Below are positions 3,263 through 62,974 of a stretch of DNA of 64,000 bases, piece after piece. A model generated the notes under the pieces. That model saw only the letters and a program-made list of their open reading frames with translations. It did no database searches and had not been told where the DNA came from. Origin of the DNA: Carpediemonas membranifera BICM (lineage: Eukaryota > Protista > Fornicata); contig JAHDYR010000038.1 in NCBI GenBank assembly GCA_019828565.1, positions 1,190,552-1,254,551 of the forward strand, written 5' to 3'. A program made the position numbers and the translations under genes. Within the stretch, counting starts at the first letter, position 1. The number at the start of each line of letters is the position of its first letter.

Positions 3263-3572
3263 CGGTGATCTTTTCTGTGTGCGAAACTCTGACTGTGTAC
3301 CAGCGATGAAATCGAAGTGCCGCGAAATCGTCCAGCAAATGTTCAGACATAAGCTCCACACCAGCCCTTGTTATCACTGCCCTATGCCGACAGAGGTTGG
3401 CTAGGGTCTATAAAAAGCTTATCTCCGTTGTGATTTAAACTGCAGATTGCGCACTTTCACAGAATGCTGCGGCCGACACTCTCAATGGCACGCACTATTC
3501 AGTCACGGCGAGGGGCATACTTGCAAACATCCGGGTAAAAAAGTGAAACATCGAGATCGCGACCAGTGAAGA

Positions 3573-30263: not shown

Positions 30264-31290
30264 TTATGAATTCTCCTGGGGCTTCCCGCCCGCACGCCTA
30301 CACCATCCCGATGGTGACCATTCAATCTTTATGGACCACTCGTACCCGTACGAGTAAAGGAAGGAGACGACTGCTATTCGAGGTGCGCGAACCATTCGCA
30401 CCTCGTCACAGCTGTCGAGCCGCACCGCTTCGGCGATGTAGCTCTGGAGGGAACTCTCGGACTTCCAAGTACCGAGGGCCATGACCACTGGAGTGGGCAT
30501 CCCGCGAAGTACAGCGTCCGCTGCGGCCCCGCGACGGAAGCTATGGGATCCAACTGGGTCTCCAAAGACCTGCTTCAGCTTGTCTTGGAGCATAGCGGGG
30601 GGCAACGGCCCTCGGTCCAGCCTCGACCCATCGAGGTTGGGGGACTTCCAGATGGTGGCGTCTCTGTCCTGGCACCAGCGCTGCAGGTGAGCCATGAGCA
30701 TCCCTGCCGGATTGAGCGCGCCTTCGACCCACGGGATGAACTTCTTAACTGCGCGAAGCCCTGTCTTGGTGGAGTCGATGGTGATAGAGACGCCGAGTCC
30801 TGCTTTCACCCTGATATCCCGAGGAGTGAGGGGTAGGATCTCACTGCGCCTCGACATTGTTGCGTAGGCAACGACGCCGAATAAGAAGGCTTGGTGGAAC
30901 TCCTCGTCGCGGCCGGCGAGTTTGGGGATCAGGCGGTGGATGCGTGCAGCCCGCACTGGGACCTTGCGTTGCGGCCTGGGGACTGTAGCGCGCTTCGCTT
31001 CGGTGATGAATGCCTTTTTGAGCAGCTGGGGGTGCCCACGTTGATACCAGGGGTGCAAACCTTACCACCAGCGAGCCCCGGTGCGCCAGACGGTCTGGGC
31101 CTACTAGCTCAGCCTCGCGAGCGAGCCACGCCAGGAATGTGTCGCGGTCCGATGCCGGGTTGGCCTCTCGGAAGGTCAGGAACTGGGAGACGACACCCGC
31201 CGTGTCACGCCTGGTCGTTGCCACGTAGCCTTTGAGCTCGTCTAGACCTAGTACTGCGTTGAAAGCGGCGTCGTCGGCACGAAGACGGCG
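30264..31290 (-). CDS. Tyrosine recombinase of DIRS B
   Basis: TMSRRSEIL, STKT, HSFRRGAA and GTWKSESSLQSY give intact R-K-H-R-W-Y; frameshift ~31040; start approximate. Confidence 0.88.
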
Positions 31291-33207
31291 AGGAGCCGCG
31301 GCTTTTCCCCCACGAGGATGTTCTGGAGCTCTGAGTCCTTCATGTCCTCCGCGTAGACCCTGAACGTTCTCTTGAAGGGGGGAGAGGCCCTTGATGCGGC
31401 GTACCGCCTCGGACTGGACGTCGGGCATCACCACGACCACTGCAGACTTGGTATGCCTCGGATGTGAGGCTGGTGAGGCGCGAATGAGGGCCAGTCGGTT
31501 GGCTACGGCTGGAAGAAGGGCGTATGGTGGTGCTGCGAAGACTCTCTTGCTGCGCCACTCCGAGCTCATGCCGCTCTCGGCCAGCGTGAGCGAACGCTCG
31601 ACGAAGCCGGGAAGTAGTAACTCCTTGTCCCTCCCACCAGTCACGTCGACCTCGAGAGGGCCCCACTCCTCCAGTATGGCAGCGAGGATCCCTCGTGGTG
31701 TCCGCCATTCCAGTCGCTGGTATCTCGACAGAGCATCTGCGGAGACATTGAGGTGCCCGCTGACGTGCTGGGCTCTCAGTGTGATCTGGCAGGCGGCCAA
31801 GCGGGAAAAGAGGGTGAGACAAGCGTCCTGGATCATCGGCGGGGCTCGCGTTGATCCCTGCTTGTTCAACCAGGCGCAGGCGTTGCTGTTGTCGATGAAT
31901 ACGGTGATCTCCCTGTCCGTTAGATGTGGAAGGAGCGTCTCCACGGCGTTCGTCGCCGCAAAGAACTCTTTCACCGCAATGGACTCGTTCTGGAGCGGGC
32001 TGTTGGGGGAGACGGAGGAGGATACGATCGTCTGCTTGCAGCCGTCCCTGATAATGGCAGCTAAGCCCTTTTCTGAGGCGTCCGACTGGATGTGGATGTC
32101 GATTGCCGGGCTTGCGCCCCACATGCTGATCAGGGAGTCGAAGGAGCGGGGATGATGATCTTCGCTGCTCAGCAGTTGCTTCCAGTACGATAGGGCCTTG
32201 AGGACGGCTTTCGTAAAGCCTTTCTCCGTCTCGGTGGCTGTCTGAAGAGGTCTCAGCCATGCGCGGCCGTCGGGGAAGCACAGAGATGCGAAGGATAGCT
32301 TCCCGATGAGGGATTGCCACCTCTTGTTGCTCATATTGCCTTCTATCAGCGCACTCTCGACCAATTGGCGGTATCTGCTGCGCTTCTTCGAGTCTAGGGA
32401 AATGACCCGAGCAGCTGAGTCGATGCGCATGCCGAGGTATGTCAGGACTGTGGTGGGCTCTAGGACTGACTTGTCGTGGTTGATGATAAAGCCTAGCTGA
32501 TTCATGATGTCCAGGAGGCGCTGGCGCTCGCGCAGAAGGGCCTTCTTCTTCCCGAAGAATAGAAGGTCGTCCAGATAGACGGCAACTCCTACACCGCGGC
32601 AATGGCGCTTGATAATCTTCGCTACGGTAATCATGATCTTCTGGAAGTAGAATGGCGCCGCGGACCATCCGAATGGGAGGACTGTGAACTGATAGTGGAC
32701 GCCGCGGTGAATAAAGCCTAGGAGGGACTGCGATGATGGGTGAATGGACACGTGGTGGTAGCCTGCATGGAGATCTAGCGACATCATCATGTCTCCTGGC
32801 GCAAGGCTTAAAACTGCTCTCTTGGCACCGAACAAGCGGAACGTACGGCGCTCTTTGGAGACCTTGTTGAGCGGTATGAGGTTGTGGACTGCTCTCCATT
32901 TGTCTGTACCCTTCGGGACTGGAAAGAGAGGACATGTGAGCTTCGGTGGTGATGAGACGCGGTGTATGGCACCCGATGAGAGCATTTCGCGCACCAGCGG
33001 ATCGAGCTTGGCTAAGTCCTTCTCTGGGAGATGGAATATTCGAGGATTGCTCGGTTGTTGTGTCAGTTCGATGGGTATGCCGTCGCCAACCCAAGAGACC
33101 ACGTCGGATGGCGCTCCCAAGCGCCGCCACGCGGCCACTGAGTGGCGGAGAGAACCCGCTCGACGGGTTGTGGGGAGTGGTGGTTCGGTTGATTGATGGT
33201 CTTGCAC
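31249..33207 (-). CDS. RT-RNase H-methyltransferase-like pol of DIRS B
   Basis: LPFGWSAAP, YLDD, SDAS, IDN, NVSADALSR, then WGPLEVD...VFAAPPY; frameshift ~31380. Confidence 0.9.
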
Positions 33208-33949: not shown

Positions 33950-35110
33950 ACCCTGAGTAAGATTCCCCGCCTGGGTGACAAGCAGAGAGAACGAACGGCT
34001 TTTCAGTCGCGCCCTCGACCGAAATGAAGCGGCCGACGCGCCGAGTAATTGTGAAAAGAAAACGAATCCCTCTCCCCCCGCCCCCTCTCTCTCCCCTCTC
34101 CCCTCTCCAGCTTTCTCCTCTCTCACCTCCTCCCCCGCTCCTCCGACACCTCCCCCACCCCCGCCCGAGCCACTTCTGCCCCGGTCCGCGCCAGCGCCGC
34201 TCCGCTTCCCGTCCATCACAAATGCCCAGGTCTGGAAAGACTTGGGCGCGCGATCGGAGGTGGTCAAGTGGATCCGGGAAGTCGTTCCCGTCGACATCCT
34301 CGGACCAGCGGAGAGAAGCCCCGCATCCCACCACCTCGCCCGGCCGACAGGCCCGTCTTCAGACGCCATCTGAAGGAGCTCTTGGCCACAGGAGCTGCTG
34401 TGCCGTTCCGCAGCCCCGCGCTGATATGTCCGATATTCTTAGTGGCGAAAGGAGAGTCGGACACGAGGTTGATCCACGATCTGAGACCCCTCAACAGCGT
34501 GACGTCGGAGACCAGGACGTTCCGGCTCCACGGAGTGAAGCGCGTAGTGCACCTACTGGCGGAAGGCGACAGCCTGGCTCGGTTGGATTTGAAATCCGGG
34601 TACTGGCAAGTCGGTGTACGGCCGAGCGATTCAACTCTCCTAGGCTTTGTTGTGGATGGGAGGCCGTACGCATTCCGTGTGCTGCCGTTCGGATGGGCTG
34701 CCGCCCCGTTTCACTTTCAGCAAATCATGCTGGAGGCCGCAAGGATGGTAGCTGCTCGCTTCAGCGTGAAGATAGTCGTCTATCTAGACGACTGGGCGTT
34801 CATGGCACCGCACGGACATCTCAAGGAGACAATGCCGCTCATAGTCTCCTTCCTCCAGCGACTCGGCCTTATCCTGAACCTCGCGAAGTCAGAGCTCCAG
34901 CCGGTAGACAGCACGGTCTTCCTCGGCATGCTGATCGATGCAGCACGACGCACGATCATGGTGGAGCCGTCGAAGGCCGCCAAGTACATCTCCAGGATCG
35001 ACGATGCCCTCAACCGTGGATCATCGGCCACAGAGTGGAAGCGGCTCGTCGGCAATCTCTCCTTCGCAGCAGTGGCGATCCCGGAAGGACGACTGTGGCT
35101 CCGCCACCTC
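33950..35110 (+). mobile_element. DIRS-type element D fragment (gag C-terminus + RT N-terminal part)
   Basis: TLSKIPRLGDK matches gag C (TLSKIPRLTEK); RT motifs LIHDLRPLN, LPFGWAAAP, VYLDDW. Confidence 0.85.
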
Positions 35111-38391: not shown

Positions 38392-39258
38392 TTATCTCTT
38401 CTTATCCTTCTCTAATAAGGCTCTGAACGGGGCTACGGACGTGCTGTAGTCCAGGCGAAGCACGTCTTCCACATAACGGATCAATGAGTTCTGGTCAGCC
38501 CATGTGCCCTTCGCCGCAACAACCGGGATAGGGATACCCATCAGAACCAGGTCAGCCGCGCTCCCGCGGCGCAGACCGTGCAGCCGAGCCTGCGTGGAGA
38601 TGATGCCCTTCACCTGGTCCTCAATGACTGAGTAGGGGTGCGACCAGAGAGGGTCTTCGGCCACCGCGCCTGCATCTATCCTATTGACTAGGACCTCAGA
38701 TAGCCAGTGAGCCGGGTCTAGCTCCCCGTCGACTCTCGGGACGAGCTTCTCAACGACCACTCGCCGGGTCTTAGTGCCGTGGATGGAGATTCTTAGCCCG
38801 CGGCGCGCGCTCTCCGCTCTAACGTCACCAACATGCAGGGCATAGATCTCTCCTGGCCTGGAGGTCGTGGCGTAGGTGGTCAGTGCAAAGGCGAAAGCCT
38901 CCTTCCAAAGGTCGTCGTCTCGAGACTGAGGGTGGGCAGCCCGAAGCCTGTCAACCAGAGTGTGCGCGCGAATCGGGAGAGCAGGCCCTCTAAGCTTCCC
39001 AAGAGCGTTCCTTGCCTGCTCTTTGATGACTGCGTCGGCGTCCAGCGGTGGTTCCCATGATGACACCCGGCCGAAGAAGCGACGGATTAGGCTCCACTTC
39101 GAGGTGATTGTATCCTTGGTGACCCTCGAGGCTTGGTCCTTGGCCCATGCTCTTATGACTTCGATGCTGCTAGTGTCAGGTGGAAGGGCACCCCAGAAAC
39201 CCGAGAACTGTTGGAGCACACCCGCGACGTGGCGCTTGTCTACGAATCCACTTAACAT
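38392..39258 (-). CDS. Tyrosine recombinase of DIRS C
   Basis: TTSRPGEI, GTKT, HGLRRGSA, GTWADQNSLIRY. Confidence 0.9.
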   Translation of the reverse strand: MLSGFVDKRHVAGVLQQFSGFWGALPPDTSSIEVIRAWAKDQASRVTKDTITSKWSLIRRFFGRVSSWEPPLDADAVIKEQARNALGKLRGPALPIRAHTLVDRLRAAHPQSRDDDLWKEAFAFALTTYATTSRPGEIYALHVGDVRAESARRGLRISIHGTKTRRVVVEKLVPRVDGELDPAHWLSEVLVNRIDAGAVAEDPLWSHPYSVIEDQVKGIISTQARLHGLRRGSAADLVLMGIPIPVVAAKGTWADQNSLIRYVEDVLRLDYSTSVAPFRALLEKDKKR

Positions 39259-39286
39259 GTCACCCTCGAGGGAGATGGTGAAGATG

Positions 39287-41146
39287 TCACTCCCACAAAC
39301 AGGGCCGCCAATCGGTATGTGCCGTCCGCCTGCAGGGGGTGATCGCTGATAGGTCCGCGTCCTCCGCTTTGACTCTGAAGAACATGCGGTGCGGAGTCAG
39401 CTCTCTCAGCGCAACTGCCGTCGGCGATCTGCAGTCGGACACTAGCAGGACGAGGGCACTTGGTAGGGATCTCGGCTGTGTGGTCCTTGCAATGTGGAGG
39501 TGGCACAGCTTTGCATATACTGCTGATAGGAGCGCGAAGGGTGTCACTGCTAGCCACCTTCCTGTCGACCAGTCCATGTCTATGAACCTGCTGTCGTCGA
39601 CCGTCGACGGGCTGTGTTCTACTCGAGCTCCAAGCCACTCGGAGGGCCAGATCTCTTTCTGCATGGGACCCCACTCGGCTGTGATCCTGTCGATGATCCG
39701 ACGAGGCGCTGAGAGCGTTTCGGACCTCGACAATGCGTCGGCTTGGACGTTCAAGTGACCAGAGACGTGAAGGAGCCTTATCCTGATGGCCCTTTCGCTC
39801 AGTGTGGGTAGCAGGTCCCGTATGACTGAGTCTACAAACTGCGGAGCCTTGGTTGAGCCTTGCTTGTTCCACCAGCTGACTGCTGCCACCGAGTCGGAGT
39901 AGATGGTGACCTCCGCGTCTGTCAACGGCTCTGCTAGGATCAGTCTCACTGCTTGTTCCACTGCTCGGAACTCGAGCAATGTGATGTGCTCGTCCACCGG
40001 GGCCGGCCTGGTGAAGGTGAAGGGTTGACGGCCCGGGATTGTGATCACTCCGCCGAGTCCTGAGTGAGAGGCGTCTGTCATCGCTGTGATGTGGAGCGTC
40101 GGAGACAGACCCCACAGGTGAAGCAGCTCTTGGAAGGACCTTATCGGAGATGGCCGTGATAAGCGGCGCTCCCATTGGATCAGTGCTTCTCTCGCTTCGC
40201 CGGATATGAGTGTGCGGTAGCGGTCCTTCAGTTGGGCTCTCTGGAGGGGTCTGATAGCGGCTCGGCCCTCCGGCCAAATGATGGCTGCAAAGCCGAGATT
40301 GCCCAACAACCGCTGCATGCTGTGTGTCGTGGCCCCCGATGCCAAGGCCTCCCTGACTCGTGAGAGGTACTTCTGCCGCTTGCTGTCCTGCAGAGCGATC
40401 CCCCGCCGGCCAGAGTCCATGACGAAGCCAAGGAAGTCGGTCTGCTGCGTGGGTGAGAGCTGCGATTTCTTCCTGTTGATGACCAGGCCGAGGTTCTCTA
40501 GGAGCTGTAGTATGCCGGGCATCGCAGCGGTCAGTGTCTTCTTGTCCCCGGACAGGAGCCAGTCGTCGAGATAGATGGTCAAGTTGATGCCTGGGAACAT
40601 CCGTGCTACGATCTGCGCTGCTGTCAGCATCACCCTTTGGAAGAAGAATGGCGCTGGGCCCCAGCCGAAGGGTAGGACGTTGAAGGCATAGGGTCTCCCG
40701 TCGACCACGAAACCCAGCAGCGGGCTGTCCGAGGCCCTGACCCCTAACTGGTAGTAGCCCTTGACTAGGTCCAAGCGTGCCATGTAGTCTCCTTCGCGAA
40801 GCTGGGCCATCGCTTGCTTGACTCCCTTCAGCCGAAAGGTTCGATGTTCCGTTGACACTGCGTTCAATGCCCTTAGGTCGTGGATCAGACGCGTCTCTGG
40901 TGGCGTCTTCGGCACAGTGAAGATAGGTGAGATCAAGCTGGGAGACCGGCATGGGCTTGCCGCGCCCAGGCTCAGGAGGGTTTTCAGGTGGTCGCGGAAT
41001 GCCTTGCGGTCCTTGGCGCGAGTTGGTGGTAGGCGCGGATGACGAGGGTGCGCTCTTAGGGATATCGGGACGCCCTCGCGTAGCCACGTAACCACCTCTG
41101 ATGGCGCGCCCAAGTGCCTCCATAGGCGCCACTGCCTGTTGATGCA
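39287..41146 (-). CDS. RT-RNase H-MT-like pol of DIRS C (N-terminus split off by the LINE)
   Basis: LPFGWGPAP, IYLDDW, TDAS, YSDS, NVQADALSR, WGPM..DW..WLAVTPF. Confidence 0.9.
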   Translation of the reverse strand, partial: CINRQWRLWRHLGAPSEVVTWLREGVPISLRAHPRHPRLPPTRAKDRKAFRDHLKTLLSLGAASPCRSPSLISPIFTVPKTPPETRLIHDLRALNAVSTEHRTFRLKGVKQAMAQLREGDYMARLDLVKGYYQLGVRASDSPLLGFVVDGRPYAFNVLPFGWGPAPFFFQRVMLTAAQIVARMFPGINLTIYLDDWLLSGDKKTLTAAMPGILQLLENLGLVINRKKSQLSPTQQTDFLGFVMDSGRRGIALQDSKRQKYLSRVREALASGATTHSMQRLLGNLGFAAIIWPEGRAAIRPLQRAQLKDRYRTLISGEAREALIQWERRLSRPSPIRSFQELLHLWGLSPTLHITAMTDASHSGLGGVITIPGRQPFTFTRPAPVDEHITLLEFRAVEQAVRLILAEPLTDAEVTIYSDSVAAVSWWNKQGSTKAPQFVDSVIRDLLPTLSERAIRIRLLHVSGHLNVQADALSRSETLSAPRRIIDRITAEWGPMQKEIWPSEWLGARVEHSPSTVDDSRFIDMDWSTGRWLAVTPFALLSAVYAKLCHLHIARTTQPRSLPSALVLLVSDCRSPTAVALRELTPHRMFFRVKAEDADLSAITPCRRTAHTDWRPCLWE

Positions 41147-41635
41147 GGGAAATGGTGGAACCAGTTCACCAATGATTTCAGCAAAGTGGAAACACTTCGA
41201 TCATGGATGGACAAGGACCAACAGGCCTGGCCTATATGGATAGGGCAGTGCCCCATGGAGCTCAGAAGGAGCGGCCTTGGCCTCCTGTCTGAACATTCAA
41301 GGGTTGCTATCAGGGCATACCGCTGGGCGCGAGTGGGAGCTCCACGCCCATACCAAGGAATCAAAGTGTCTTCATGGAACGTATGTTTACAAGGAAAAGG
41401 AAAACAACCGTCGAGGGCCAGTGCTAGCACCGGCGGCTACATGGTTTTGTCAAGACCACAAGGAAGGAAGGGCAGCACAAAAGGGAAACAGGGGCCGTCG
41501 ATAGAGGCTAAAAAGGAGACTACGAACAAAGCAACAACAACTACACAGAAAGGCCCCGCTACTCAGAAAAGGGCGACGCATTTTTAGGACCGCGCCTTTT
41601 TGAAAGAATGGCCTATATAGTACGGAGCATGGACA

Positions 41636-50614: not shown

Positions 50615-53310
50615 GTCAGACAGGCTGACGATCCGGTAGACTCCGTCCATTCCCACAGGGAACCAGTCGCCGCCCAAGCGATTGCAGCCGATCGGTGCAC
50701 TTTAAGACACTCTCGATGTCTTTCATGCAAGCTGTGCCCCGGCTGCAATTCATTGCATATGCCAACACAAAGAGCTCAAAACGAGGTCTATAGCCCTCAA
50801 CGGCGCTTCGTTGAGGAGTTCTAGCGATTTTTCACTTTTGTTGCGCAATTTCTTCATCTGATGCGCAATTATTGAACCATCGAGCCTAAAAGAGACTCTA
50901 AAGCCTTAACGGCTTCCAAATAGCCAATATCACCTTGTCCATCAAGGTTTATGATTAGCCTCACTAAGGCCCACAATCATACCCCTCGCAGCCACTCCTC
51001 AATGGCTTTGAGGGGCTTATCTCTTCTTATCCTTCTCTAATAAGGCTCTGAACGGGGCTACGGACGTGCTGTAGTCCAGGCGAAGCACGTCTTCCACATA
51101 ACGGATCAATGAGTTCTGGTCAGCCCATGTGCCCTTCGCCGCAACAACCGGGATAGGGATACCCATCAGAACCAGGTCAGCCGCGCTCCCGCGGCGCAGA
51201 CCGTGCAGCCGAGCCTGCGTGGAGATGATGCCCTTCACCTGGTCCTCAATGACTGAGTAGGGGTGCGACCAGAGAGGGTCTTCGGCCACCGCGCCTGCAT
51301 CTATCCTATTGACTAGGACCTCAGATAGCCAGTGAGCCGGGTCTAGCTCCCCGTCGACTCTCGGGACGAGCTTCTCAACGACCACTCGCCGGGTCTTAGT
51401 GCCGTGGATGGAGATTCTTAGCCCGCGGCGCGCGCTCTCCGCTCTAACGTCACCAACATGCAGGGCATAGATCTCTCCTGGCCTGGAGGTCGTGGCGTAG
51501 GTGGTCAGTGCAAAGGCGAAAGCCTCCTTCCAAAGGTCGTCGTCTCGAGACTGAGGGTGGCCAGCCCGAAGCCTGTCAACCAGAGTGTGCGCGCGAATCG
51601 GGAGAGCAGGCCCTCTAAGCTTCCCAAGAGCGTTCCTTGCCTGCTCTTTGATGACTGCGTCGGCGTCCAGCGGTGGTTCCCATGATGACACCCGGCCGAA
51701 GAAGCGACGGATTAGGCTCCACTTCGAGGTGATTGTATCCTTGGTGACCCTCGAGGCTTGGTCCTTGGCCCATGCTCTTATGACTTCGATGCTGCTAGTG
51801 TCAGGTGGAAGGGCACCCCAGAAACCCGAGAACTGTTGGAGCACACCCGCGACGTGGCGCTTGTCTACGAATCCACTTAACATGTCACCCTCGAGGGAGA
51901 TGGTGAAGATGTCACTCCCACAAACAGGGCCGCCAATCGGTATGTGCCGTCCGCCTGCAGGGGGTGATCGCTGATAGGTCCGCGTCCTCCGCTTTGACTC
52001 TGAAGAACATGCGGTGCGGAGTCAGCTCTCTCAGCGCAACTGCCGTCGGCGATCTGCAGTCGGACACTAGCAGGACGAGGGCACTTGGTAGGGATCTCGG
52101 CTGTGTGGTCCTTGCAATGTGGAGGTGGCACAGCTTTGCATATACTGCTGATAGGAGCGCGAAGGGTGTCACTGCTAGCCACCTTCCTGTCGACCAGTCC
52201 ATGTCTATGAACCTGCTGTCGTCGACCGTCGACGGGCTGTGTTCTACTCGAGCTCCAAGCCACTCGGAGGGCCAGATCTCTTTCTGCATGGGACCCCACT
52301 CGGCTGTGATCCTGTCGATGATCCGACGAGGCGCTGAGAGCGTTTCGGACCTCGACAATGCGTCGGCTTGGACGTTCAAGTGACCAGAGACGTGAAGGAG
52401 CCTTATCCTGATGGCCCTTTCGCTCAGTGTGGGTAGCAGGTCCCGTATGACTGAGTCTACAAACTGCGGAGCCTTGGTTGAGCCTTGCTTGTTCCACCAG
52501 CTGACTGCTGCCACCGAGTCGGAGTAGATGGTGACCTCCGCGTCTGTCAACGGCTCTGCTAGGATCAGTCTCACTGCTTGTTCCACTGCTCGGAACTCGA
52601 GCAATGTGATGTGCTCGTCCACCGGGGCCGGCCTGGTGAAGGTGAAGGGTTGACGGCCCGGGATTGTGATCACTCCGCCGAGTCCTGAGTGAGAGGCGTC
52701 TGTCATCGCTGTGATGTGGAGCGTCGGAGACAGACCCCACAGGTGAAGCAGCTCTTGGAAGGACCTTATCGGAGATGGCCGTGATAAGCGGCGCTCCCAT
52801 TGGATCAGTGCTTCTCTCGCTTCGCCGGATATGAGTGTGCGGTAGCGGTCCTTCAGTTGGGCTCTCTGGAGGGGTCTGATAGCGGCTCGGCCCTCCGGCC
52901 AAATGATGGCTGCAAAGCCGAGATTGCCCAACAACCGCTGCATGCTGTGTGTCGTGGCCCCCGATGCCAAGGCCTCCCTGACTCGTGAGAGGTACTTCTG
53001 CCGCTTGCTGTCCTGCAGAGCGATCCCCCGCCGGCCAGAGTCCATGACGAAGCCAAGGAAGTCGGTCTGCTGCGTGGGTGAGAGCTGCGATTTCTTCCTG
53101 TTGATGACCAGGCCGAGGTTCTCTAGGAGCTGTAGTATGCCGGGCATCGCAGCGGTCAGTGTCTTCTTGTCCCCGGACAGGAGCCAGTCGTCGAGATAGA
53201 TGGTCAAGTTGATGCCTGGGAACATCCGTGCTACGATCTGCGCTGCTGTCAGCACGCTGGGCCCCAGCCGAAGGGTAGGACGTTGAAGGCATAGGGTCTC
53301 CCGTCGACCA
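50615..53310 (-). mobile_element. DIRS C' - near-identical, 5'-truncated tandem copy of C sharing the A repeat
   Basis: 50495-53310 duplicates 37870-40707 (small deletion at ~53255); YR 51017-51883, pol 51912-53310. Confidence 0.92.
51017..51883 (-). CDS. Tyrosine recombinase of DIRS C'
   Basis: One amino-acid difference from 38392-39258. Confidence 0.9.
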   Translation of the reverse strand: MLSGFVDKRHVAGVLQQFSGFWGALPPDTSSIEVIRAWAKDQASRVTKDTITSKWSLIRRFFGRVSSWEPPLDADAVIKEQARNALGKLRGPALPIRAHTLVDRLRAGHPQSRDDDLWKEAFAFALTTYATTSRPGEIYALHVGDVRAESARRGLRISIHGTKTRRVVVEKLVPRVDGELDPAHWLSEVLVNRIDAGAVAEDPLWSHPYSVIEDQVKGIISTQARLHGLRRGSAADLVLMGIPIPVVAAKGTWADQNSLIRYVEDVLRLDYSTSVAPFRALLEKDKKR

Positions 53311-53313
53311 TCA

Positions 53314-53387
53314 GGGCGGTTGGCTCAATTGGATAGAGTACCTGACTACGGATCAGGTGGTTGCAGGTTCGAGTCCTGCATCGCTCG
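53314..53387 (+). tRNA. tRNA-Arg(ACG)
   Basis: GGGCGGTTGGCTCAATTGGATAGAGTACCTGACTACGGATCAGGTGGTTGCAGGTTCGAGTCCTGCATCGCTCG followed by AATTTT. Confidence 0.95.
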
Positions 53388-53395
53388 AATTTTAT
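53376..53395 (+). repeat. Target-site duplication copy 1 (tRNA 3' end + terminator)
   Basis: CTGCATCGCTCGAATTTTAT also at 56956-56975 and 58900-58919. Confidence 0.93.
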
Positions 53396-56300
53396 TTCAC
53401 TCTTTGCGGTCGTTGACTCCGACTCGGTCGTCGATGGCGCTCTCGCGGCTTACTGCGTTAAACGGCGTAAAGGAACACGGTTTGCGTTCACTTTGAGCAG
53501 CAGCGCGCATCTGAGCACCAAGGCTCGATTTTGCGCAATTTCACGCATCCACTCGCACAAAACGTACCAAAACTCCTTGAAAGGAGCTACTTCTCCGCAA
53601 AAGACAACGAAAGTAACCAAAGTGAGATCAAAACAGCGAAATGTTGTGGTATTCCCGTTCTTACTCACTCACAATGTCCTGCCCAGCAGCAGCCGCGCGT
53701 TCGCGAGCAGCTTGGGCTTGTGTCAACCAATCCACGATGGCTCTGCACTGCCACTTCCAATTGGCAACGAAAACCCGGTCCACGAGACGATCCTTGGCCG
53801 CGTTGTCCAGCAGCTTCATCTCGACCAGCCTCTCTGGCCAGGGCACACCGCCAGCCTTCCAGGGCGCGCAACGGCCGCTCGAACTGACAACAGCAGGCAC
53901 CATATCAACGTTGAAGTGCTGATACTGCTTCACCTTATCAGCCCGCGCGTCGGAGACGTAGTCCGAGCAGACGATGTCAATGACGGGTTTCACGCCGCCC
54001 TCGTCGGGCCTGACTTCGACGTCCATGCGCACTCTGTACGGCCGCAAAGGATGCTTCGCCTCTGCAGACTTCGGCGTCAGCCACCTCTCAGGCCTGGCTG
54101 CCACGCCCTCCTCCTTGAGGGTCCTGATCACTTCGTCCCGGATGGCGTCATGCCGCTGCACCTTTGCGTCACCGCGTAGGCACGGGCACACCACCGCGTG
54201 CGACCAGCCCTTCATAGCCACAGTACGACTGTGCTTCTCAGAGCAGATCGGGCACACTCCAGCCGCGTCGCTAAAGGCGGGCCGGCCCAGGTGGTCGGCG
54301 ATCATGGCCCGGTCGACCTCGTGGCGGTTCGACTGCCTCGTGACAGAGACTGGGTCGGACTTGAGCATAGCGCTGATGATGTTGGGCGCGACGACGCTGT
54401 CCTTCACCGCAGGGTTGGTGTTGAAATTATGTTCCTTCAACAGGCACACCAACTCGTGCTGCGGCTTGTCCTTGCCGACCGCCTTCAGCGCTGCCTCATC
54501 CTTGGGCCAATCCTTCACGTTGGCGCCCAGCGCGAGGACCTTATCCAGGTCGGGCCGGCTGAGGCCAAACTCCAGCAGATGCCGGGAGGCCCCCAGGTAG
54601 GCGGGAGCCCAGACATCGAGCGGCATCGGCAAGCCGAGACCGCCCGCATGCACCGGCAGCCCTAGCCGCCGGCAGAACTTCTTCATCTCTTCCGCATCGG
54701 TGATCTTGTCTTGCAGGATGTCCAAGACGGCTGGGGCAATACACTGCCGTTCAAAGACGGCCGTCTTGCCCAGCAAATTGCCCTGGCCTGTGGTAGACTT
54801 GATCGTGGGGAGAACGTTGCGGTAGAAATGTATGGGGATGGTGAGCGCAGACACCCTGACGATCGTCAGAGCCACCGCCGTGGCCTTCGACCCGATCTCC
54901 CGGCAGAGCTCCTTGGCGGCGTCGAGCACGGCCTTCACCTTCTTCAGGATCTTGCTACAGCACTCAACGTGGAAGGCTGAGGAGACGGAGATGGGGATAC
55001 CCACCAGCTTGAATGACTGCGCCCGCGTCACCTGGTCCGAAGCGTTGTTGTCGTCCCGCGACTCGCGATGAGCGACCGCACACTTGGACCGGTTCAACGG
55101 CATCCCAACACTCGCAAAGAGCTGCTCCGACCGAGAGACGAATGAATTCGCCTTCCGGCCCGTCTCGTAGTCTTGCAGGGGGCTCGGGATGGACGCCGAA
55201 ACGTCATCCTGGTATCCGCGAACAGTGAAGTCCGGGAATTCCCCGCGCAACTGCGTCAGCAGAGGGAACATGCCCAGCGAGAAGAGGAGTGGGGAGAGAG
55301 GATCACCCTGGTGGATGCCCTCCTCCGAGGCCCACACCTCGCCAGTCGTCGTCAGCAGCAAGCCGCTGGCGTACATTCGGCGGAGGTAGGGGCCGAGTAC
55401 GGGAATATATGCCTCGACCACCTTCACGAGATAATCTCGGGACATCGTGCCATACGCGTTGGACATGTCCAACGTCACGATGGTGCTCCCGTTCATGTAC
55501 TCGTTCAGCGTGGCCGTCGCCAGCCGCTCCAGGCCGGCTGATTCGCCAAGCCCGAATTGGTCCCCCAACTCAACTCATCCTCGACGACAAGCCTTGGGAA
55601 GACGACTGTTGCGGCGACCTTAGCCGCCAGCCGGCGCAGCACCTCGCCTATTGCGACAGGGCGGACCCCACCGCAATCCTTCGGCACCGGCACCAGGATC
55701 GCGTGTGCGAAGATCGACGTGTACTCCTCACCGTCCAGGATGTCCTGCAAGACAGGCTCCAAGGCGGCTACGAGGTCTCCACGCCTCACGCTCGCGGCAA
55801 TGCGCAGGTGTAGCGCTGACAGGCCCGACGGTCCAGGGGCGGATTCCGGCGAAAGGCTCATGAGTGCGGCCTTGATCTGCTTGCGCGAGACCGTGATGGC
55901 ACTGAGCGGGTTCGCCGGCACGTCGGGGAGGGAGATGTTCGGCACAAGCCCTGTCGGAGCTTCTCCTTCAGAGACTGATTGATCTCGTCAGGCGTGAGGG
56001 TCGTCTCCGACCCCGTGATCGCTGTCACTGCCTTGGAGATGAAGCCACGTATGGCCAAGTTCCACGCGCGCCTTGTGCGGTTGGCTCTCGGCCTGCGAGC
56101 CGAGACCTTCGGAGGTGCGTACAAGGTCTGCGCGTACGAGCACAGTCTCGCGGCGGCAGCAAGTTTGGCGTCCGTGCCTTCGGCGTCGGCGATTGCCTTC
56201 AGGCGGCTGATCAAGCCCTCCGCGAACCCGGCGCGACGGCGCTTGGGTGGGGCGAGCTTACCCAGGAAGAGGGCCTTCGCTGGGTCGAGGAAACAGTCTG

Positions 56301-56955
56301 GGCGGACGGGGGCCGTCGCTCTGCGCTGATTGAACTCTGGCGTCTGGGACGCGTCGAGTGTAACGCTGGACGGGCCCTCGCTTGCCTGGCTTGCTGGGCG
56401 TTGAGGGGTCTGACTCGGAGCCGGCGGTTGGCTCGGAATCGGCGGGCGGGGGACGGGGGCAGACTGAGTCTGGGGTGAAGGGCTGAGGGCGCGGGCGGTG
56501 TCGGTTGACCCAACAGGCGCACCAGCGATCCGGGCGACAGTCCTCACGACTTCGGCTGCATGAGCAGGCGCTGTATCGATCATTGTCATGCGAGACTTCG
56601 TGACGTTGGGCGCATTGCGACCCTCGTATGCCACGGCAACTGCACGAATTCTGTCGAGGATCTCCCGCAGTTTTGCGAGAGTCAGACGTTTGTTCTTACG
56701 GGACTTCCCGTCTCCAAGCCAAGTTCTGACGTTTGCTTCGTTCTGCAAAGCGTCAAATAGTTCCTGATTACTGTTGAAGTCGTTCACGACCTCATCAGGG
56801 ACGTATTGTGCGAAATTTTTGCGGATTTCGGAGATAACGTGGAGAAGCTCCTCCTGGATCCCTAATGTACCACCAGGCACATCAGGAGACCTTGTGAAGA
56901 TGATTCTCCCACCTCCTTCTTGTGATCGTCGGTGATCTACCGACATTCTCTGATG
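53396..56955 (-). mobile_element. CRE-like RLE non-LTR retrotransposon, copy 1 (3.56 kb), inserted at the tRNA-Arg 3' end
   Basis: Bounded by the 20-bp TSD; single RT-RLE ORF. Confidence 0.9.
53661..56946 (-). CDS. RT + CCHC + restriction-like endonuclease (~1095 aa, frameshifts ~55960 and ~55565)
   Basis: SAPGPSGL, PKDCGGVRPVAIGEVLRRL, QFG, LDMSNAY, GIHQGDPLSPLLF, YQDD, LPVHAGGLG, CPIC..HAVVC, RHDAIRD, RMD..IDIV..KVKQY. Confidence 0.9.
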
Positions 56956-56977
56956 CTGCATCGCTCGAATTTTATAT

Positions 56978-58898
56978 CACTCTTTGCGGTCGTTGACTCC
57001 GACTCGGTCGTCGATGGCGCTCTCGCGGCTTACTGCGTTAAACGGCGTAAAGGAACACGGTTTGCGTTCACTTTCAGCAGCAGCGCGCATCTGAGCACCA
57101 AGGCTCGATTTTGCGCAATTTCACGCATCCACTCGCACAAAACGTACCAAAACTCCTTGAAAGGAGCTACTTCTCCGCAAAAGACAACGAAAGTAACCAA
57201 AGTGAGATCAAAACAGCGAAATGTTGTGGTATTCCCGTTCTTACTCACTCACAATGTCCTGCCCAGCAGCAGCCGCGCGTTCGCGAGCAGCTTGGGCTTG
57301 TGTCAGCCAATCCACGATGGCTCTGCACTGCCACTTCCAATTGGCAACGAAAACCCGGTCCACGAGACGATCCTTGGCCGCGTTGTCCAGCAGCTTCATC
57401 TCGACCAGCCTCTCTGGCCAGGGCACACCGCCAGCCTTCCAGGGCGCGCAACGGCCGCTCGAACTGACAACAGCAGGCACCATATCAACGTTGAAGTGCT
57501 GATACTGCTTCACCTTATCAGCCCGCGCGTCGGAGACGTAGTCCGAGCAGACGATGTCAATGACGGGTTTCACGCCGCCCTCGTCGGGCCTGACTTCGAC
57601 GTCCATGCGCACTCTGTACGGCCGCAAAGGATGCTTCGCCTCTGCAGACTTCGGCGTCAGCCACCTCTCAGGCCTGGCTGCCACGCCCTCCTCCTTGAGG
57701 GTCCTGATCACTTCGTCCCGGATGGCGTCATGCCGCTGCACCTTTGCGTCACCGCGTAGGCACGGGCACACCACCGCGTGCGACCAGCCCTTCATAGCCA
57801 CAGTACGACTGTGCTTCTCAGAGCAGATCGGGCACACTCCAGCCGCGTCGCTAAAGGCGGGCCGGCCCAGGTGGTCGGCGATCATGGCCCGGTCGACCTC
57901 GTGGCGGTTCGACTGCCTCGTGACAGAGACTGGGTCGGACTTGAGCATAGCGCTGATGATGTTGGGCGCGACGACGCTGTCCTTCACCGCAGGGTTGGTG
58001 TTGAAATTATGTTCCTTCAACAGGCACACCAACTCGTGCTGCGGCTTGTCCTTGCCGACCGCCTTCAGCGCTGCCTCATCCTTGGGCCAATCCTTCACGT
58101 TGGCGCCCAGCGCGAGGACCTTATCCAGGTCGGGCCGGCTGAGGCCAAACTCCAGCAGATGCCGGGAGGCCCCCAGGTAGGCGGGAGCCCAGACATCGAG
58201 CGGAATCGGCAAGCCGAGACCGCCCGCATGCACCGGCAGCCCCTAGCCGCCGGCAGAACTTCTTCATCTCTTCCGCATCGGTGATCTTGTCTTGCAGGAT
58301 GTCCAAGACGGCTGGGGCAATACACTGCCGTTCAAAGACGGCCGTCTTGCCCAGCAAATTGCCCTGGCCTGTGGTAGACTTGATCGTGGGGAGAACGTTG
58401 CGGTAGAAATGTATGGGGATGGTGAGCGCAGACACCCTGACAATCGTCAGAGCCACCGCCGTGGCCTTCGACCCGATCTCCCGGCAGAGCTCCTTGGCGG
58501 CGTCGAGCACGGCCTTCACCTTCTTCAGGATCTTGGTACAGCACTCAACGTGGAAGGCTGAGGAGACGGAGATGGGGATACCCACCAGCTTGAAAGACTG
58601 CGCCCGCGTCACCTGGTCCGAAGCGTTGTTGTCGTCCCGCGACTCGCGATGAGCGACCGCACACTTGGACCGGTTCAACGGCATCCCAACACTCGCAAAG
58701 AGCTGCTCCGACCGAGAGACGAATGAATTCGCCTTCCGGCCCGTCTCGTAGTCTTGCAGGGGGCTCGGGATGGACGCCGAAACGTCATCCTGGTATCCGC
58801 GAACAGTGAAGTCCGGGAATTCCCCGCGCAACTGCGTCAGCAGAGGGAACATGCCCAGCGAGAAGAGGAGTGGGGAGAGAGGATCACCCTGGTGGATG
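56978..58898 (-). mobile_element. CRE-like element copy 2, 5'-truncated within RT
   Basis: Near-identical to 53398-55319; flanked by CTGCATCGCTCGAATTTTATAT on both sides. Confidence 0.92.
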
Positions 58899-59098
58899 CC
58901 TGCATCGCTCGAATTTTATATGCCAGATTTTGCTGGCCACACAACATATACACTCTGCCCGACTCGCGGGCCACCTGACCCTCTACACTCTGTAGATCCA
59001 ACGGGGTTGTCCCGCCGGCCGAGGAGATATCATTAACTCCTAGCTGTCACCTCCCGTGAGGTCGCAACAGCCTGCACCATAAACATCCCATCGAATGT

Positions 59099-59990
59099 TT
59101 ACAGTGGCTTGCCCAAAAGAGACCTGGCGATGTCTCTCTGGACCGCGGGGTGCTGGCGGATGCCATTGCCGGTGTACGCCAGCAGGCTCTTCGCGGAGCG
59201 CCAGTTCCCCAGTGCCATCAGCACGTGCTCAGGAGTGCCGGCGACGGCGAGCTCGGTCGCCGCGCCCTTTCTGAAGCTGTGCCAAGTGACGGAGTCGCCA
59301 AACACTGCTGCGATCCAGCGCCTCATTGCGCCTTCTGACAGCCCCTCTGTCTTGCTGATCGTGTCTCCGTTGACCTTCCTCCATAGTGAATCCGTGTCGC
59401 GCTTCGTGGCCAAGTTGACCCAAAGCTGGAGCGCCTTCGCGATGTTGAATGAGTCAAAGGTGGCGTTGACCACGAGCTTCTTCACCGCTGTGGTAGTCTT
59501 GGTGCGTGCCATGAACAGCGTCGCGTCGCCCTCTGGGCTGAACGTCACGTCTCCCCTCGTCAGAGTGAAGATTTCCTTGCCGCGGCTGACAGTTTGGAAG
59601 CAGAGTGCGGCGAACAAGACCGCCTGGAACGTCTTCGGATCTTGTTTCCAACGTCGGAAACCCGACCGGATTATGTCGCTCGTCACCGGTCGAGCCCCGC
59701 CAGTCAGTCTGGTGGTGGATGCTACGTTGCGGACTGATCGAATGATCTCGCTGCTGTCCTGCGGGGGGGTCCAGTCGCAGATCAGTGGGGCCACTTTGCA
59801 AATCCAGTGTCCCTTCTTGCCGATCGTGTCGGGCCCCGAGGTCTTGGCTTCGCTCATGAGGTGCTGCCTGAGCTGCGCCGCGTGTGATAGCGTGGTGTCT
59901 CTCGACGCGTTGAACTTGACGAGGTAGCCCGCGACTGCCCTGCGTGACGCCTCTAGGCTCAGATGTGAGAGCCTGTCGTGGTGGAGGAGG
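59099..59990 (-). CDS. Tyrosine recombinase of DIRS E
   Basis: R-K-H-R-W-Y residues intact; start approximate. Confidence 0.85.
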
Positions 59991-61890
59991 AACTCGAAGT
60001 CCTGATGATCATCGCGATGAGCCTTATCCTGCCCCTCTCGGCCAGCCGCGACAGCTCGGAGTCCGACAGAAGATCTTGGTTCACTCTGAAGTACATCTTG
60101 GGAACTGATGAGAGGGCTAGCAAGCGGCGGAGTTCTGGTGACGGGATGTCCGGAGTCACTATTATCGCAGCTGACCTCCACGTCTGAGGGGATCCAGTCT
60201 GGGTCGGCGACCGAATCGTCCGAATATGCAGATATGTCGCTGGAATCATCGCTACTGGAGGAGCTGCGAAGACTCTCATCCCCGTCCAGTCCCGAGACAG
60301 GCCGTGTTCTGCGAGAGTCCATCCGTGCTGAGCGAATCCTGGGAGGGCCAGGCGGCGAGTGGGAGCGGCGGTCGCGTCGACCTGCACTGGTCCCCAGTTG
60401 CGCTGGATTCGCTCGAGGACTGAACGCGGGGTCGACCACTCGAGCTTCATGAACCGGCTCAGCCTGTCCGGCTCCACGTTGAGGTGTCCTGCGATGTGAA
60501 GACATCGAGCCACGAGGTTTCTGCTGTCGAGGTGTTGTTGCAGCTCGTGGAGTAGGCTCATGACTGTCTGGTCTGCTCTTGTCGATCCGCCCTTGTTGAC
60601 CCACGAGACTACGGCCGAGTTGTCGCAGAAAACTGTCAGGGTGCGCACCTGCGGCTGTGGAGAGATGAGTTCGATGCCCCGAACGACTGCGAAAAGCTCC
60701 TTTGTGCAGATGTGGGCGTTCACTATGTGCGGGGGGAAGTGCCCATGCGCCGATCTGTTGTTCTCTCCGAGGTATACTCTGGCCCCCCAGCCGAAGCTGG
60801 ATGCGTCGGACGCCACTGTCATCTCCAGGGAGCCTGTCATGTCCCAGAGGGCCCTGAGCTCGATAAATGACTTGGCTGGGCGCTGCTGCAGCAGTGAGAC
60901 CCACTGGGCGAGCTCTTGCTTGAGGGCTGCATCCAAAGGTACTCTGCCTCTCGGCTGTCTTGCTTGCAACGGCCGCAGCTTGAGCTGTGCTGCATGCGCT
61001 GCGGAAGCGAAGAAGGAGAGACGCCCTAGGATCTTGGAGTAGTCGACGGCGCTGATGGAGTCGCTCTCCAACGCGGATATCAACGTCTGCTGATACTTGC
61101 GCGCCTTGTCGCTGGAAAGGCGCACTGAAGTGTTCTCCGTATTGATGAGGAGGCCGAGGTACTCCAAGCAGCGTGTAGGCTGAAGAATACACTTGTCCAG
61201 CCCCGGAATGAGGCCGAGGGAGCGCATGAGCTCGAGGGCCTCGTGTGTTGCCCATGCCAGGTGCTCCTTGCGCGCAGACGATAGGTAGGAAGTCGTCTAG
61301 ATACACGCAAACGTGGATCTGGAGGCGCCTGGCGATGATCTTTGCGGCCTGGATGGTTATTGTCTGAAAGTAGAACGGAGCCGCGGTCCAACCGAAGGGG
61401 AGTCCAGTGTAGCAGAATGTCTCGCCCTCCGGAGTGACCACGCCCAGAAGTGTCCTGTCCTGCTCCCTGACTGGGACTTGAGAGTACCCCGAGCGGAGGT
61501 CGATCTTCGTCATCCAGTCCCCGGCCGTGAGCGTCGCCAAAGCACGTTTGATGCCGAAGAGGCGGAAGACTCGGGTCTCCTCCGTCACGGTGTTGAGTTC
61601 TCGGAGGTCGTGTATTACTCGGATGTCGTCCGAGCCTTTCGAAACAGGGAAGATCGGGGCCGAATGGCGGAGGGACTGCAGGGTCGTTCTGCGGAGAATG
61701 CCCTCGTTCAACAGCTGTTGGAGCTTGGCCCGAACACGTGGGTCCAGTCGCGTCTGTGGTGCGGCCGCCGACGGAGGCGCGGTCAGTGATATTGGAACGC
61801 CGTCTCTGAGAAGGCTGACGACGTGCTCTGAGGCGCCGAAGCGCTCCCAGAGTCGCCACACGTCGCCAGTTATCGATGGGAAGAGGTGGT
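59959..61890 (-). CDS. RT-RNase H-MT-like pol of DIRS E (+1 frameshift at ~61285)
   Basis: LPFGWTAAP, YLDDFL; removing one C restores LSSARKEHLAWATHEALELMRSLGL. Confidence 0.88.
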
Positions 61891-61896
61891 TCTCGG

Positions 61897-62571
61897 TTAG
61901 TTTGACTGCCGGTTGCGACCGCGAGAGCTGCCGCCTCGGCCCCCGCCTCCCGGAGGCTGAAACTTGTCGCCCTTTCGCTTGGCTCCGTGAATCTTAGACT
62001 TGAGCTCGAAGGACTCGATCTGGGACTCGTCGAGGGTTCCTTTGTCCGCGATGGCCTTCCATACCTGGTTCTGAAAGTAGGTGACTGTGACGTCGTTGTA
62101 ATCTTCATCCTTCATCATCAGAGCTCTACGCCGGGCGGAGAGGAGGGGGGAAAGACGCTTGAGGAGTTTCGTGTCTGTAGAAGAGGTGAGGATCGTTTGA
62201 ACCTTCCGAAGGAACTTCGCCTCCTCCAGAAGAGGGCGCTTCTTCGGCAGCTCGGTCATGGCCTCAATGTATGAAAGGGAAGCCATGATGGGGTCTTGTT
62301 CATCTTCTTCAAACGCCAGTTCCTCGTGGAAATCCGCTTCAGATTCGGCGCTTGCGGCGGCCATCCTCTCGAGGATCTTGGTGGATCTCTCCTGAGCTTT
62401 CTGCATCTCCTGCACCGTGGTACGCAGTTCTGCCACTTCCTCGGCCGTCGCAGCCACCGGCTGCGAATCGTTCGTCATCTGGCCGCATAAACTGCGCCGA
62501 CCAATCTTGACCAATGACGCGGGCATCCGGCGATTGCCGGCCTCGCCCACGTCCCGTCGCCCTTGCGACAA
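61897..62571 (-). CDS. Gag-like ORF1 of DIRS E
   Basis: Coiled coil, LLEEAKFL, basic Gly-rich tail; precedes pol. Confidence 0.72.
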   Translation of the reverse strand: MSQGRRDVGEAGNRRMPASLVKIGRRSLCGQMTNDSQPVAATAEEVAELRTTVQEMQKAQERSTKILERMAAASAESEADFHEELAFEEDEQDPIMASLSYIEAMTELPKKRPLLEEAKFLRKVQTILTSSTDTKLLKRLSPLLSARRRALMMKDEDYNDVTVTYFQNQVWKAIADKGTLDESQIESFELKSKIHGAKRKGDKFQPPGGGGRGGSSRGRNRQSN

Positions 62572-62974
62572 TGAGCTGGGGTACTACCCTACCCAAGGGG
62601 GGTTGGACATTTATCTCTTATCTGTCCGGCGGTCTCTTCCGCCATTTCTCTTGGCCTGACTCCATTTTCAGTCGATTGCGCCATCGATTCTCCCGGATCG
62701 AATCACCTCGATTCGTATCCGAAACTGCCACCAGATTCAACCTCTTAGCACGGCGACCCGGTCCCGCTGGGGTCTCGCCCGCGCCTCGGCACTCCAGGGT
62801 GCCCGTGAGCTCATGTGAAACTCCACTCTTTGCGGTCGTTGGCTAGAGTATCCTAGCATCCTAACTCATATCCAAATGGGGGGGAATAATATTTACTCGG
62901 ATTTCCTGTCTCTCCGCGTAAATATTCAGCGTCTTCTTTCGTTTCCCGCGTTCCTCGCGAGACGAGGCAGGTCC

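Follow-up and report, generated by a model that had tools for sequence, protein, structure and literature searches.

A tRNA-Arg(ACG)-specific retrotransposon of Carpediemonas membranifera stands in antisense stacks behind its target gene

Non-LTR retrotransposons bearing a restriction-like endonuclease (RLE) are often strictly site-specific, and R2 elements (e.g., R2Bm, R2Tg), which insert into 28S rDNA, are among the closest described systems for the element studied here. They possess a single ORF encoding a reverse transcriptase followed by a CCHC knuckle and an RLE, target a multicopy RNA gene and show 5' truncations. Elements of the CRE clade (CRE1/2, SLACS, CZAR) target spliced-leader genes or telomeres; typical of the clade are N-terminal C2H2 zinc finger(s), and long target duplications are typical of SLACS. 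GilM and GilT of Giardia, a fornicate relative of Carpediemonas, are placed in this clade as well (PMC10088271). RLE families with strict specificity for one tRNA species have already been published in the NeSL group, i.e. NeSL-1_TV (tRNA-Pro, Trichomonas) and the planarian LIN15_SM (tRNA-Arg) and LIN25_SM (tRNA-Glu) (Kojima and Jurka 2015, PMC4640811). Furthermore, Dictyostelium TRE5/TRE3 and yeast Ty1/Ty3 use tRNA genes as safe harbours in a compact genome. However, those are APE-type non-LTR or LTR elements, which are positioned by Pol III factors at variable distances from any tRNA gene (PMC3159450, PMC7459421).

Here we describe an element of Carpediemonas membranifera BICM (designated element A) that differs from these systems in its target and in the way it enters it. 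In contrast to R2, its target is the trailer of a tRNA gene, the insertion is non-destructive and lies antisense to the target gene, so that co-transcription with the target is impossible, the duplication is 20-22 bp, and neither an N-terminal zinc finger nor a recognizable Myb domain is present. Compared with CRE elements, the target is tRNA-Arg rather than spliced-leader genes or telomeres and there is no N-terminal zinc finger, whereas the targeting of a small multicopy RNA gene or the formation of head-to-tail arrays is shared. In the flank alignment listed under tRNA-Arg in supplement file 5 of PMC4640811, which we take to be that of LIN15_SM (the family name is not given in the file), the 3' flank starts in the middle of the tRNA. 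That element therefore sits inside the gene, in sense orientation, and disrupts it, while element A sits 8-10 nt behind the gene, antisense, and keeps the gene and its terminator. Unlike TRE5/TRE3 and Ty1/Ty3, element A is sequence- and species-specific with respect to its tRNA.

The tandem behind tRNA-Arg(ACG)

The stretch analysed (the window) comprises 64,000 nt of contig JAHDYR010000038.1 (assembly GCA_019828565.1, positions 1,190,552 to 1,254,551 of the forward strand). A sequence-only reading of this window had described a tRNA, a repeat, a first element copy, the repeat again, a second copy and the repeat a third time, and this observation is confirmed (Table 1). The 22-nt direct repeat is CTGCATCGCTCGAATTTTAT[T/A]T and consists of the last 12 nt of the tRNA plus 8-10 nt of trailer. 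The two copies are 99.6% identical and have different 3' junctions, as stated in that reading (TT at the tRNA-proximal junction, AT at the middle one). They are independent insertions, as the truncated copy has its own flanking duplication. Both copies are frameshifted pseudogenes, which had not been noticed before; the ORF of copy 1 is split into three frames. We considered whether the A/T-rich 8-10 nt belong to the element rather than to the target, but rejected this possibility, since they recur at the distal end of the array without any element tail.

Table 1. Features of the tRNA-Arg(ACG) array, in window coordinates.
Position	Strand	Feature	Basis
53314..53387	+	Intact tRNA-Arg(ACG) gene; the target, one of six identical copies in the genome	ARAGORN; Rfam RF00005, 60.6 bits; six copies 100% identical over 82 nt
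53376..53397	+	Target-site copy 1: last 12 nt of the tRNA, trailer AATTTTAT with the T4 terminator, and 2 junction-specific nt (TT)	Direct-repeat family D6; sequence
53398..56955	-	Element A, copy 1; full length (3558 nt), antisense to the tRNA; ORF broken by a 7-nt deletion near 55960 and a 2-nt (GT) insertion at 55569-55570	Sequence
53398..53660	-	3' UTR of copy 1 (263 nt), ending ...GACCGCAAAGAGTG; no poly(A) tail	No significant fold (z = -0.98)
53920..54254	-	CCHC zinc knuckle (CX2CX14HX3C) and restriction-like endonuclease core (RHD, E, D, D, K)	Invariant columns C133, P134, H151, C155, R166, H167, E188, D210 and D225 in alignment A1; AF2 model, pLDDT 74; top Foldseek hits R2 proteins, E 8e-6 to 5e-4
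54869..55918	-	Reverse-transcriptase domain, split between two frames in this copy	Pfam RVT_1, E 6e-13; best PDB sequence matches R2 reverse transcriptases, E 2e-7; coordinates from tblastn
56944..56955	-	5' end of the element: 9-nt leader CATCAGAGA and the first internal ATG	All seven full-length copies start identically
56956..56977	+	Target-site copy 2, between copy 1 and copy 2; read antisense it supplies an in-frame ATG (56959-56961) and an A/T-rich stretch just upstream of copy 1	Direct repeat; sequence
56978..58899	-	Element A, copy 2; 5'-truncated at element position 1637, 1-nt microhomology at the junction, 1-nt insertion near 58243	Sequence
58900..58921	+	Target-site copy 3, at the distal end of the array; no element tail follows it	Direct repeat; sequence

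The family encodes one protein of ~1095 aa, and one sister copy has an uninterrupted frame of about 1100 codons, whereas most other copies are frameshifted like those of the window. The element belongs to the RLE-bearing non-LTR retrotransposons (the R2/R4/CRE/NeSL/Hero grade) by its reverse transcriptase of the non-LTR type, by the C-terminal CCHC motif followed by a PD-(D/E)XK restriction-like endonuclease, and by its variable 5' truncation (at positions 1637 and 831 in different copies) and target-site duplication. The CCHC, RHD and E/D/D motifs are invariant in alignment A1, and the predicted C-terminal fold matches R2 chains first, followed by the PD-(D/E)XK nucleases MspJI, Hjc and Bax1. 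Neither LTRs nor an APE domain were found: the only repeats are the 22-mer and the two copies themselves, and Pfam finds only RVT_1. The N-terminal zinc finger is absent, as the sequence-only reading had stated. The first 350 residues hold only 2 Cys and 4 His, a Pfam search at E up to 5 gave only noise there, and the AF2 model of this part (pLDDT 54.6) is too poor for a fold search. A search of Rfam revealed nothing but the tRNA, and thus no R2-like ribozyme.

The suggestion in the sequence-only reading that copy 1 may be slightly 5'-truncated because of its 9-nt leader is not supported, as this leader is the true 5' end. For the CRE-like label given there, the only hints are the name 'Retrotransposable element SLACS' that the depositors of the genome gave to a paralogue and an Atlas neighbour cluster dominated by Euglenozoa; word-indexed protein searches, cluster look-ups and the Atlas returned no named reference elements for a reverse-transcriptase phylogeny. 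Of the traits compared without such a phylogeny, only the tRNA-target habit is shared with the NeSL clade; the N-terminal zinc fingers of that clade are absent from element A.

Genome-wide distribution of element A

We next asked whether other copies lie at unrelated sites, which would have contradicted target specificity. This was not the case. All six tRNA-Arg(ACG) genes of the genome carry the 3' end of element A, or a remnant of its tail, at the same nucleotide and in antisense orientation. The 17-nt core of the repeat occurs 14 times in 24.2 Mb, i.e. in the six tRNA genes and at eight element 5' junctions, and nowhere else, whereas the reversed-pattern control gave 0 occurrences; chance is therefore excluded. 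All ~12 copies, and every hit of at least 89% identity, lie in arrays anchored on those six genes. A copy at C47:47939-51216 (C numbers are our handles for contigs) appeared to be an off-target insertion, but it is the other half of the fragment at C47:25858-26118, a copy split by a 21.8-kb insertion. In contrast, tRNA-Val and tRNA-Phe in the same window, as well as tRNA-Arg(TCT) elsewhere, which shares the T-arm, carry no copy of element A.

Paralogous families (40-48% amino acid identity) lie beside other tRNA species, at five of five copies of one species and three of three of another, although this link rests on coordinates only. Outside this genome, two contigs with relatives, a Logan contig of run SRR31444219 and one of GCA_002919055.1, carry no tRNA within the little flank available and are therefore uninformative.

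Insertion mechanism and alternative explanations

The interpretation given in the sequence-only reading, a compact site-specific element that uses tRNA-Arg(ACG) as a safe harbour, is supported, apart from the points corrected above and from its suggestion that new copies are added next to the intact tRNA, which remains only a possibility. We consider it highly likely that element A is a sequence-specific, RLE-bearing non-LTR retrotransposon whose only genomic target is the 3' end of the tRNA-Arg(ACG) gene. By analogy with R2-type target-primed reverse transcription (TPRT), the protein would recognize the acceptor/T-arm end of the gene plus its trailer, nick the tRNA-sense strand 8-10 nt downstream of the discriminator base, just after the T4 terminator, and use that 3'-OH to reverse-transcribe the element RNA from its ...GAGUG 3' end, which would explain why the element lies antisense to the tRNA. 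The other strand would then be cut 20-22 nt upstream, inside the T-stem, and fill-in would duplicate those 20-22 nt. In this view, a complete tRNA with its terminator results on one side, a 12-nt tRNA stub plus trailer is left at the 5' end of the element, and repeated hits build head-to-tail arrays. The anatomy, the genome-wide specificity, the protein domains and very recent activity (at most 7 substitutions per 3.3 kb between copies) follow directly from our data, whereas nicking and TPRT themselves, the order and exact positions of the nicks, the duplicate of the site that is reused and the way the element is transcribed are inferred without biochemical evidence. As no empty target site exists in this genome, the pre-insertion sequence is likewise inferred only from the duplications.

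The element has saturated every copy of an essential tRNA gene without destroying any of them, in our model by cutting just behind the terminator and duplicating the end of the gene. Together with its paralogous families at other tRNAs, it makes Carpediemonas a compact natural system for studying how RLE-type elements change target and how they recognize DNA without zinc fingers. Small, strictly site-specific putative TPRT enzymes that leave their landing gene intact are also of practical interest for R2-style targeted gene insertion.

A more speculative, rather unlikely possibility is that the duplicated target does double duty. On the tRNA side, it preserves the gene and its Pol III terminator, whereas at the 5' end of the element the same 20-22 nt, read antisense (an A/T-rich ATATAAAATT, then an in-frame ATG 15 nt before the element's own ATG), might act as the initiator or promoter, so that every full-length insertion would be born transcription-ready despite its 9-nt leader. 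However, the sequences upstream of ten ORFs of the window gave no clear common A/T-rich initiator. Under the same tentative reading, element A would be one branch of a radiation in which a zinc-finger-less N-terminal domain has been retargeted to at least five or six different tRNA genes, which would make a natural set of re-aimable, non-destructive TPRT integrases.

Co-duplication could in principle explain the association as well, if one ancestral tRNA-plus-element block was spread by segmental duplication and unequal crossing-over and the element had no real target specificity. Indeed, some array units, composed of element A and a nested tyrosine-recombinase element, recur with a 7.3-kb period on C5, and likewise on C47, and were clearly duplicated by recombination rather than by new insertion; the loci on C24 and C5 (395 kb) share 311 nt upstream of the tRNA, and all six loci have the same trailer. 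Nevertheless, four of the six loci have unique, unrelated sequence within 0-5 nt of the tRNA 5' end, the 2-nt junction varies between copies (AT or TT), the truncated copy has a duplication of its own, and paralogous families show the same behaviour at other tRNA species, making this explanation unlikely. An assembly artefact appears even less probable. The tandem is seen in the assembly only, since no sequencing run was listed, and several single-base indels in the copies fall in C runs, as long-read errors do. However, the two copies differ in length, in the 5' junction, in the 2-nt 3' junction and at several bases, the frameshifts of copy 1 are not homopolymer slips, and similar arrays stand at the five other loci.

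Tethering to the RNA polymerase III machinery, as in Ty3, Ty1 or Dictyostelium TRE elements, without reading of the DNA sequence by the endonuclease and DNA-binding part, is also very unlikely for element A, which is found at one tRNA species only, at one nucleotide and in one orientation, while each paralogous family keeps to its own tRNA species. Pol III-linked targeting may nonetheless exist in this organism, as tyrosine-recombinase retroelements lie next to many different tRNA genes, both upstream and downstream, and tRNA genes are the main landing pads for several retroelement orders in this gene-dense protist genome.

Structure and state of the element A array

ARAGORN and Rfam revealed an intact tRNA-Arg(ACG) gene in the window, which is part of a genome of 24.2 Mb in 69 contigs (designated C; the window is C26:1190552-1254551). 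A 22-nt direct repeat, consisting of CTGCATCGCTCGAATTTTAT plus TT or AT, is found three times. Its first 12 nt are the last four bases of the T-stem, the 3' acceptor strand and the discriminator base of the tRNA, whereas the rest is the trailer with the T4 terminator. Two copies of one element, designated here as element A, lie between these repeats on the minus strand. The arrangement proposed in the sequence-only reading is therefore correct in every detail, including the TT versus AT difference at the two 3' junctions.

However, the ORF of ~1095 aa that was proposed in the same reading is not open in this window. Copy 1 is read in three frames, having a deletion and an insertion in comparison with its sisters, and copy 2 carries an insertion as well, so that both copies are defective. 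Seven full-length copies of A exist in the genome. Counted column by column, they differ from the commonest base at only 1-7 substitutions per 3.3 kb and at a few indels, several of which are located in C runs. One sister copy has an uninterrupted frame of about 1100 codons, and its unaltered translation was used for the protein analyses. All seven full-length copies begin with the same bases, CATCAGAGA followed by ATG, directly after the duplicated site. The 9-nt leader is thus the true 5' end rather than the result of the slight truncation that had been considered possible for copy 1.

Coordinates of element A, its target and neighbouring repeats
Feature	Position	Strand	Remarks
Intact tRNA-Arg(ACG)	window 53314-53387	+	
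22-nt direct repeat	window 53376, 56956 and 58900		
Element A, copy 1	window 53398-56955	-	3558 nt, full length
7-nt deletion in copy 1	near window 55960		
GT insertion in copy 1	window 55569-55570		
Element A, copy 2	window 56978-58899	-	starts at element position 1637, 1 nt of microhomology
1-nt insertion in copy 2	near window 58243		
ATG in the antisense duplicated site	window 56959-56961		in frame with the element's ORF, 15 nt upstream of its own first ATG
35 nt between the distal duplicated site and the next element	window 58922-58956 and L043:2943-2977		recurs exactly at C47:54943-54977 in a different context
Sister copy of A with uninterrupted frame	L042:5881-9222	-	
Parts of one split copy of A	C47:47939-51216 and C47:25858-26118		end at A position 3272 and begin at A position 3265, respectively
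Insertion splitting this copy	C47:26119-47938		21.8 kb; ends seen in L041 and L042
Reverse transcriptase/tyrosine recombinase element	window 58957-62587	-	ORF 59099-61861
Further elements of this kind	L047:4780-8534, L048:2062-5762, and the loci on C1, C24 and C47		
Elements of the same kind at other tRNA genes and at the 5' side of tRNA-Arg(ACG)	window 30393-33153 (-), 34352-34996 (+), 38407-41152 (-), 51032-53315 (-); L037:2128-3073		
Arrays of paralogous RLE elements	C39:29227-43081; C19:29407-52940; C68:11383-21975; C6, C11 and C26:1129827-1140773		known from coordinates only

C, contigs of the genome (C1 carries the NCBI proteins KAG9395000.1 and KAG9394997.1); L, individual sequence stretches; RLE, restriction-like endonuclease.

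Target site specificity

The genome possesses six tRNA-Arg(ACG) genes, which are identical over 82 nt. Each of them has the 3' end of A (...GACCGCAAAGAGTG), or a remnant of this tail, 8-10 nt behind the gene and in antisense orientation. The 17-nt core of the target, searched with up to one mismatch allowed, occurs 14 times in the genome (six tRNAs and eight A 5' junctions), whereas the reversed-pattern control gave no hits. Furthermore, all DNA matches of at least 89% identity to A are located in the arrays on these six genes. One copy on C47 looked like an outlier, but it and a second fragment on the same contig both border sequences with matching inverted ends and overlap by 8 nt, and are thus one copy split by a 21.8-kb insertion within the C47 array. 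This insertion, with inverted ends of the type ccgggacttaaagtcccgg, may be a large DNA transposon.

These data exclude chance and argue against simple Pol III tethering. Indeed, tRNA-Val and tRNA-Phe in the window carry no A copy, and neither does tRNA-Arg(TCT) on C67, which shares the T-arm but differs in the acceptor 3' strand and in the trailer. Four of the six tRNA-Arg(ACG) loci have unrelated sequence right up to the 5' end of the tRNA, while two share 311 nt. The junction dinucleotide after ...GAGTG is AT in about ten junctions and AA (TT in tRNA sense) in two, and it travels with the individual copy. The true duplication is therefore most likely 20 nt plus 2 junction-specific nt. Arrays also grow by recombination. 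Units of A plus a nested element recur with a 7.3-kb period on C5 and similarly on C47. Copy 1 and copy 2 of the window share a private variant at position 2962, which hints at local reinsertion or gene conversion. The interpretation of the sequence-only reading as a tRNA-Arg(ACG)-specific element is thus supported: A is a real, recently active RLE non-LTR retrotransposon family strictly specific for this tRNA, and its insertion is non-destructive.

Predicted protein and inferred mechanism

Pfam detected only RVT_1 in the protein, and the best PDB sequence matches are R2 proteins (E 2e-7). Few relatives share the C-terminal third. Four are strong, i.e., two Carpediemonas paralogues and two full-length relatives from outside the genome (one from a public sequencing run, one from another NCBI assembly); two further environmental proteins match weakly. 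In their alignment the motifs CPxC...H...C, RH(D/N), E, D and D are invariant; these are the CCHC knuckle and the PD-(D/E)XK core that define restriction-like endonucleases of R2-type elements. An AlphaFold model of this part (pLDDT 74) matches R2 chains 9dou, 9nl3, 9nl2 and 8gh6 first (E 8e-6 to 5e-4), followed by MspJI, Hjc, Bax1 and cap-snatching endonucleases. The first 350 residues contain only 2 Cys and 4 His, so there is no zinc finger, in agreement with the sequence-only reading. Pfam gave no hits in this region, and its model is too poor to use (pLDDT 54.6).

Whereas the arrangement of the copies, their genomic specificity, their recent activity and the domains of the protein follow from the sequences, the mechanism, including nicking and priming, is inferred by analogy with R2-type target-primed reverse transcription. 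As the + strand reads tRNA, trailer and then the complement of the element's 3' end, the tRNA-sense strand must be the primer strand. In this view, it is nicked 8-10 nt past the discriminator, just after the T run, and extended on the element RNA; the other strand is then cut 20-22 nt upstream, inside the T-stem, and repair duplicates the interval. This would keep the whole tRNA and its terminator, and as tRNA-Arg(ACG) has no unoccupied copy, the occupied genes must still work. The six loci differ downstream of the site, so recognition must lie in the tRNA end and trailer. The sequence-only reading considered addition of new copies next to the intact tRNA as probable; the present data are compatible both with this and with reuse of the 22-nt stub alone. 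Being antisense to the tRNA and having no ribozyme or structured UTR (as judged by Rfam and folding analyses), the element cannot use the R2 trick of co-transcription with its target. The antisense duplicated site directly upstream of every full-length copy is A/T-rich, contains an in-frame ATG and is a candidate initiator. In the window, an in-frame TGA from the neighbouring element tail is located 18 nt further upstream of this ATG.

Related elements and other repeats at tRNA genes

tRNA genes are listed among the known targets of sequence-specific non-LTR elements (PMC8869645). NeSL-1_TV (tRNA-Pro, Trichomonas), LIN15_SM (tRNA-Arg) and LIN25_SM (tRNA-Glu) were reported by Kojima and Jurka in 2015 (PMC4640811). 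In the flank alignment under tRNA-Arg in their supplement file 5, which we take to be that of LIN15_SM (the family name is not in the file), the element sits inside the tRNA body and is therefore destructive, unlike A. GilM and GilT of Giardia, a relative of Carpediemonas, form arrays and are placed in the CRE clade (PMC10088271), and one paralogue of A was annotated as 'SLACS' by the depositors of the genome. These are hints that the label 'CRE-like' proposed in the sequence-only reading may be right. A literature search revealed no paper on Carpediemonas retrotransposons at tRNA genes.

The genome contains many paralogous families (40-48% aa identity to A), many of them with open frames of 900-1150 aa; a first look gave 495 candidates. 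Judged by coordinates only, all five copies of one tRNA species have antisense arrays of such elements downstream (e.g., four elements in a row at C39:29227), as does one further tRNA on C68. All three copies of another tRNA species adjoin arrays in sense orientation, which abut the tRNA 5' end.

Besides, compact (~3.7 kb) retroelements encoding a reverse transcriptase and a tyrosine recombinase (Pfam RVT_1 + Phage_integrase), like DIRS/Ngaro elements, are present in at least four families. They are nested, co-oriented, inside the last 40 nt of the A 3' tail at five positions (A 3520/21, 3523-25, 3535-37, 3540, 3543/44), i.e., 23-48 bp behind the tRNA. One family has 108-nt terminal direct repeats and a 181-nt solo remnant on C47. 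However, elements of the same kind also flank the 5' sides of tRNA-Val/tRNA-Phe and of tRNA-Arg(ACG) in the window and lie downstream of, and antisense to, tRNA-Arg(TCT) on C67. They may therefore be tRNA-position-specific in general rather than readers of the A tail. The 35 nt between the distal duplicated site and the next element in the window are a fragment of some other repeat and not unique flank. Upstream of the six tRNA-Arg(ACG) genes, blocks of other repeats (727 nt, 2116 nt, 311 nt) end within 0-5 nt or a few hundred nt of the tRNA 5' ends at different loci; the upstream side is therefore also a landing zone.
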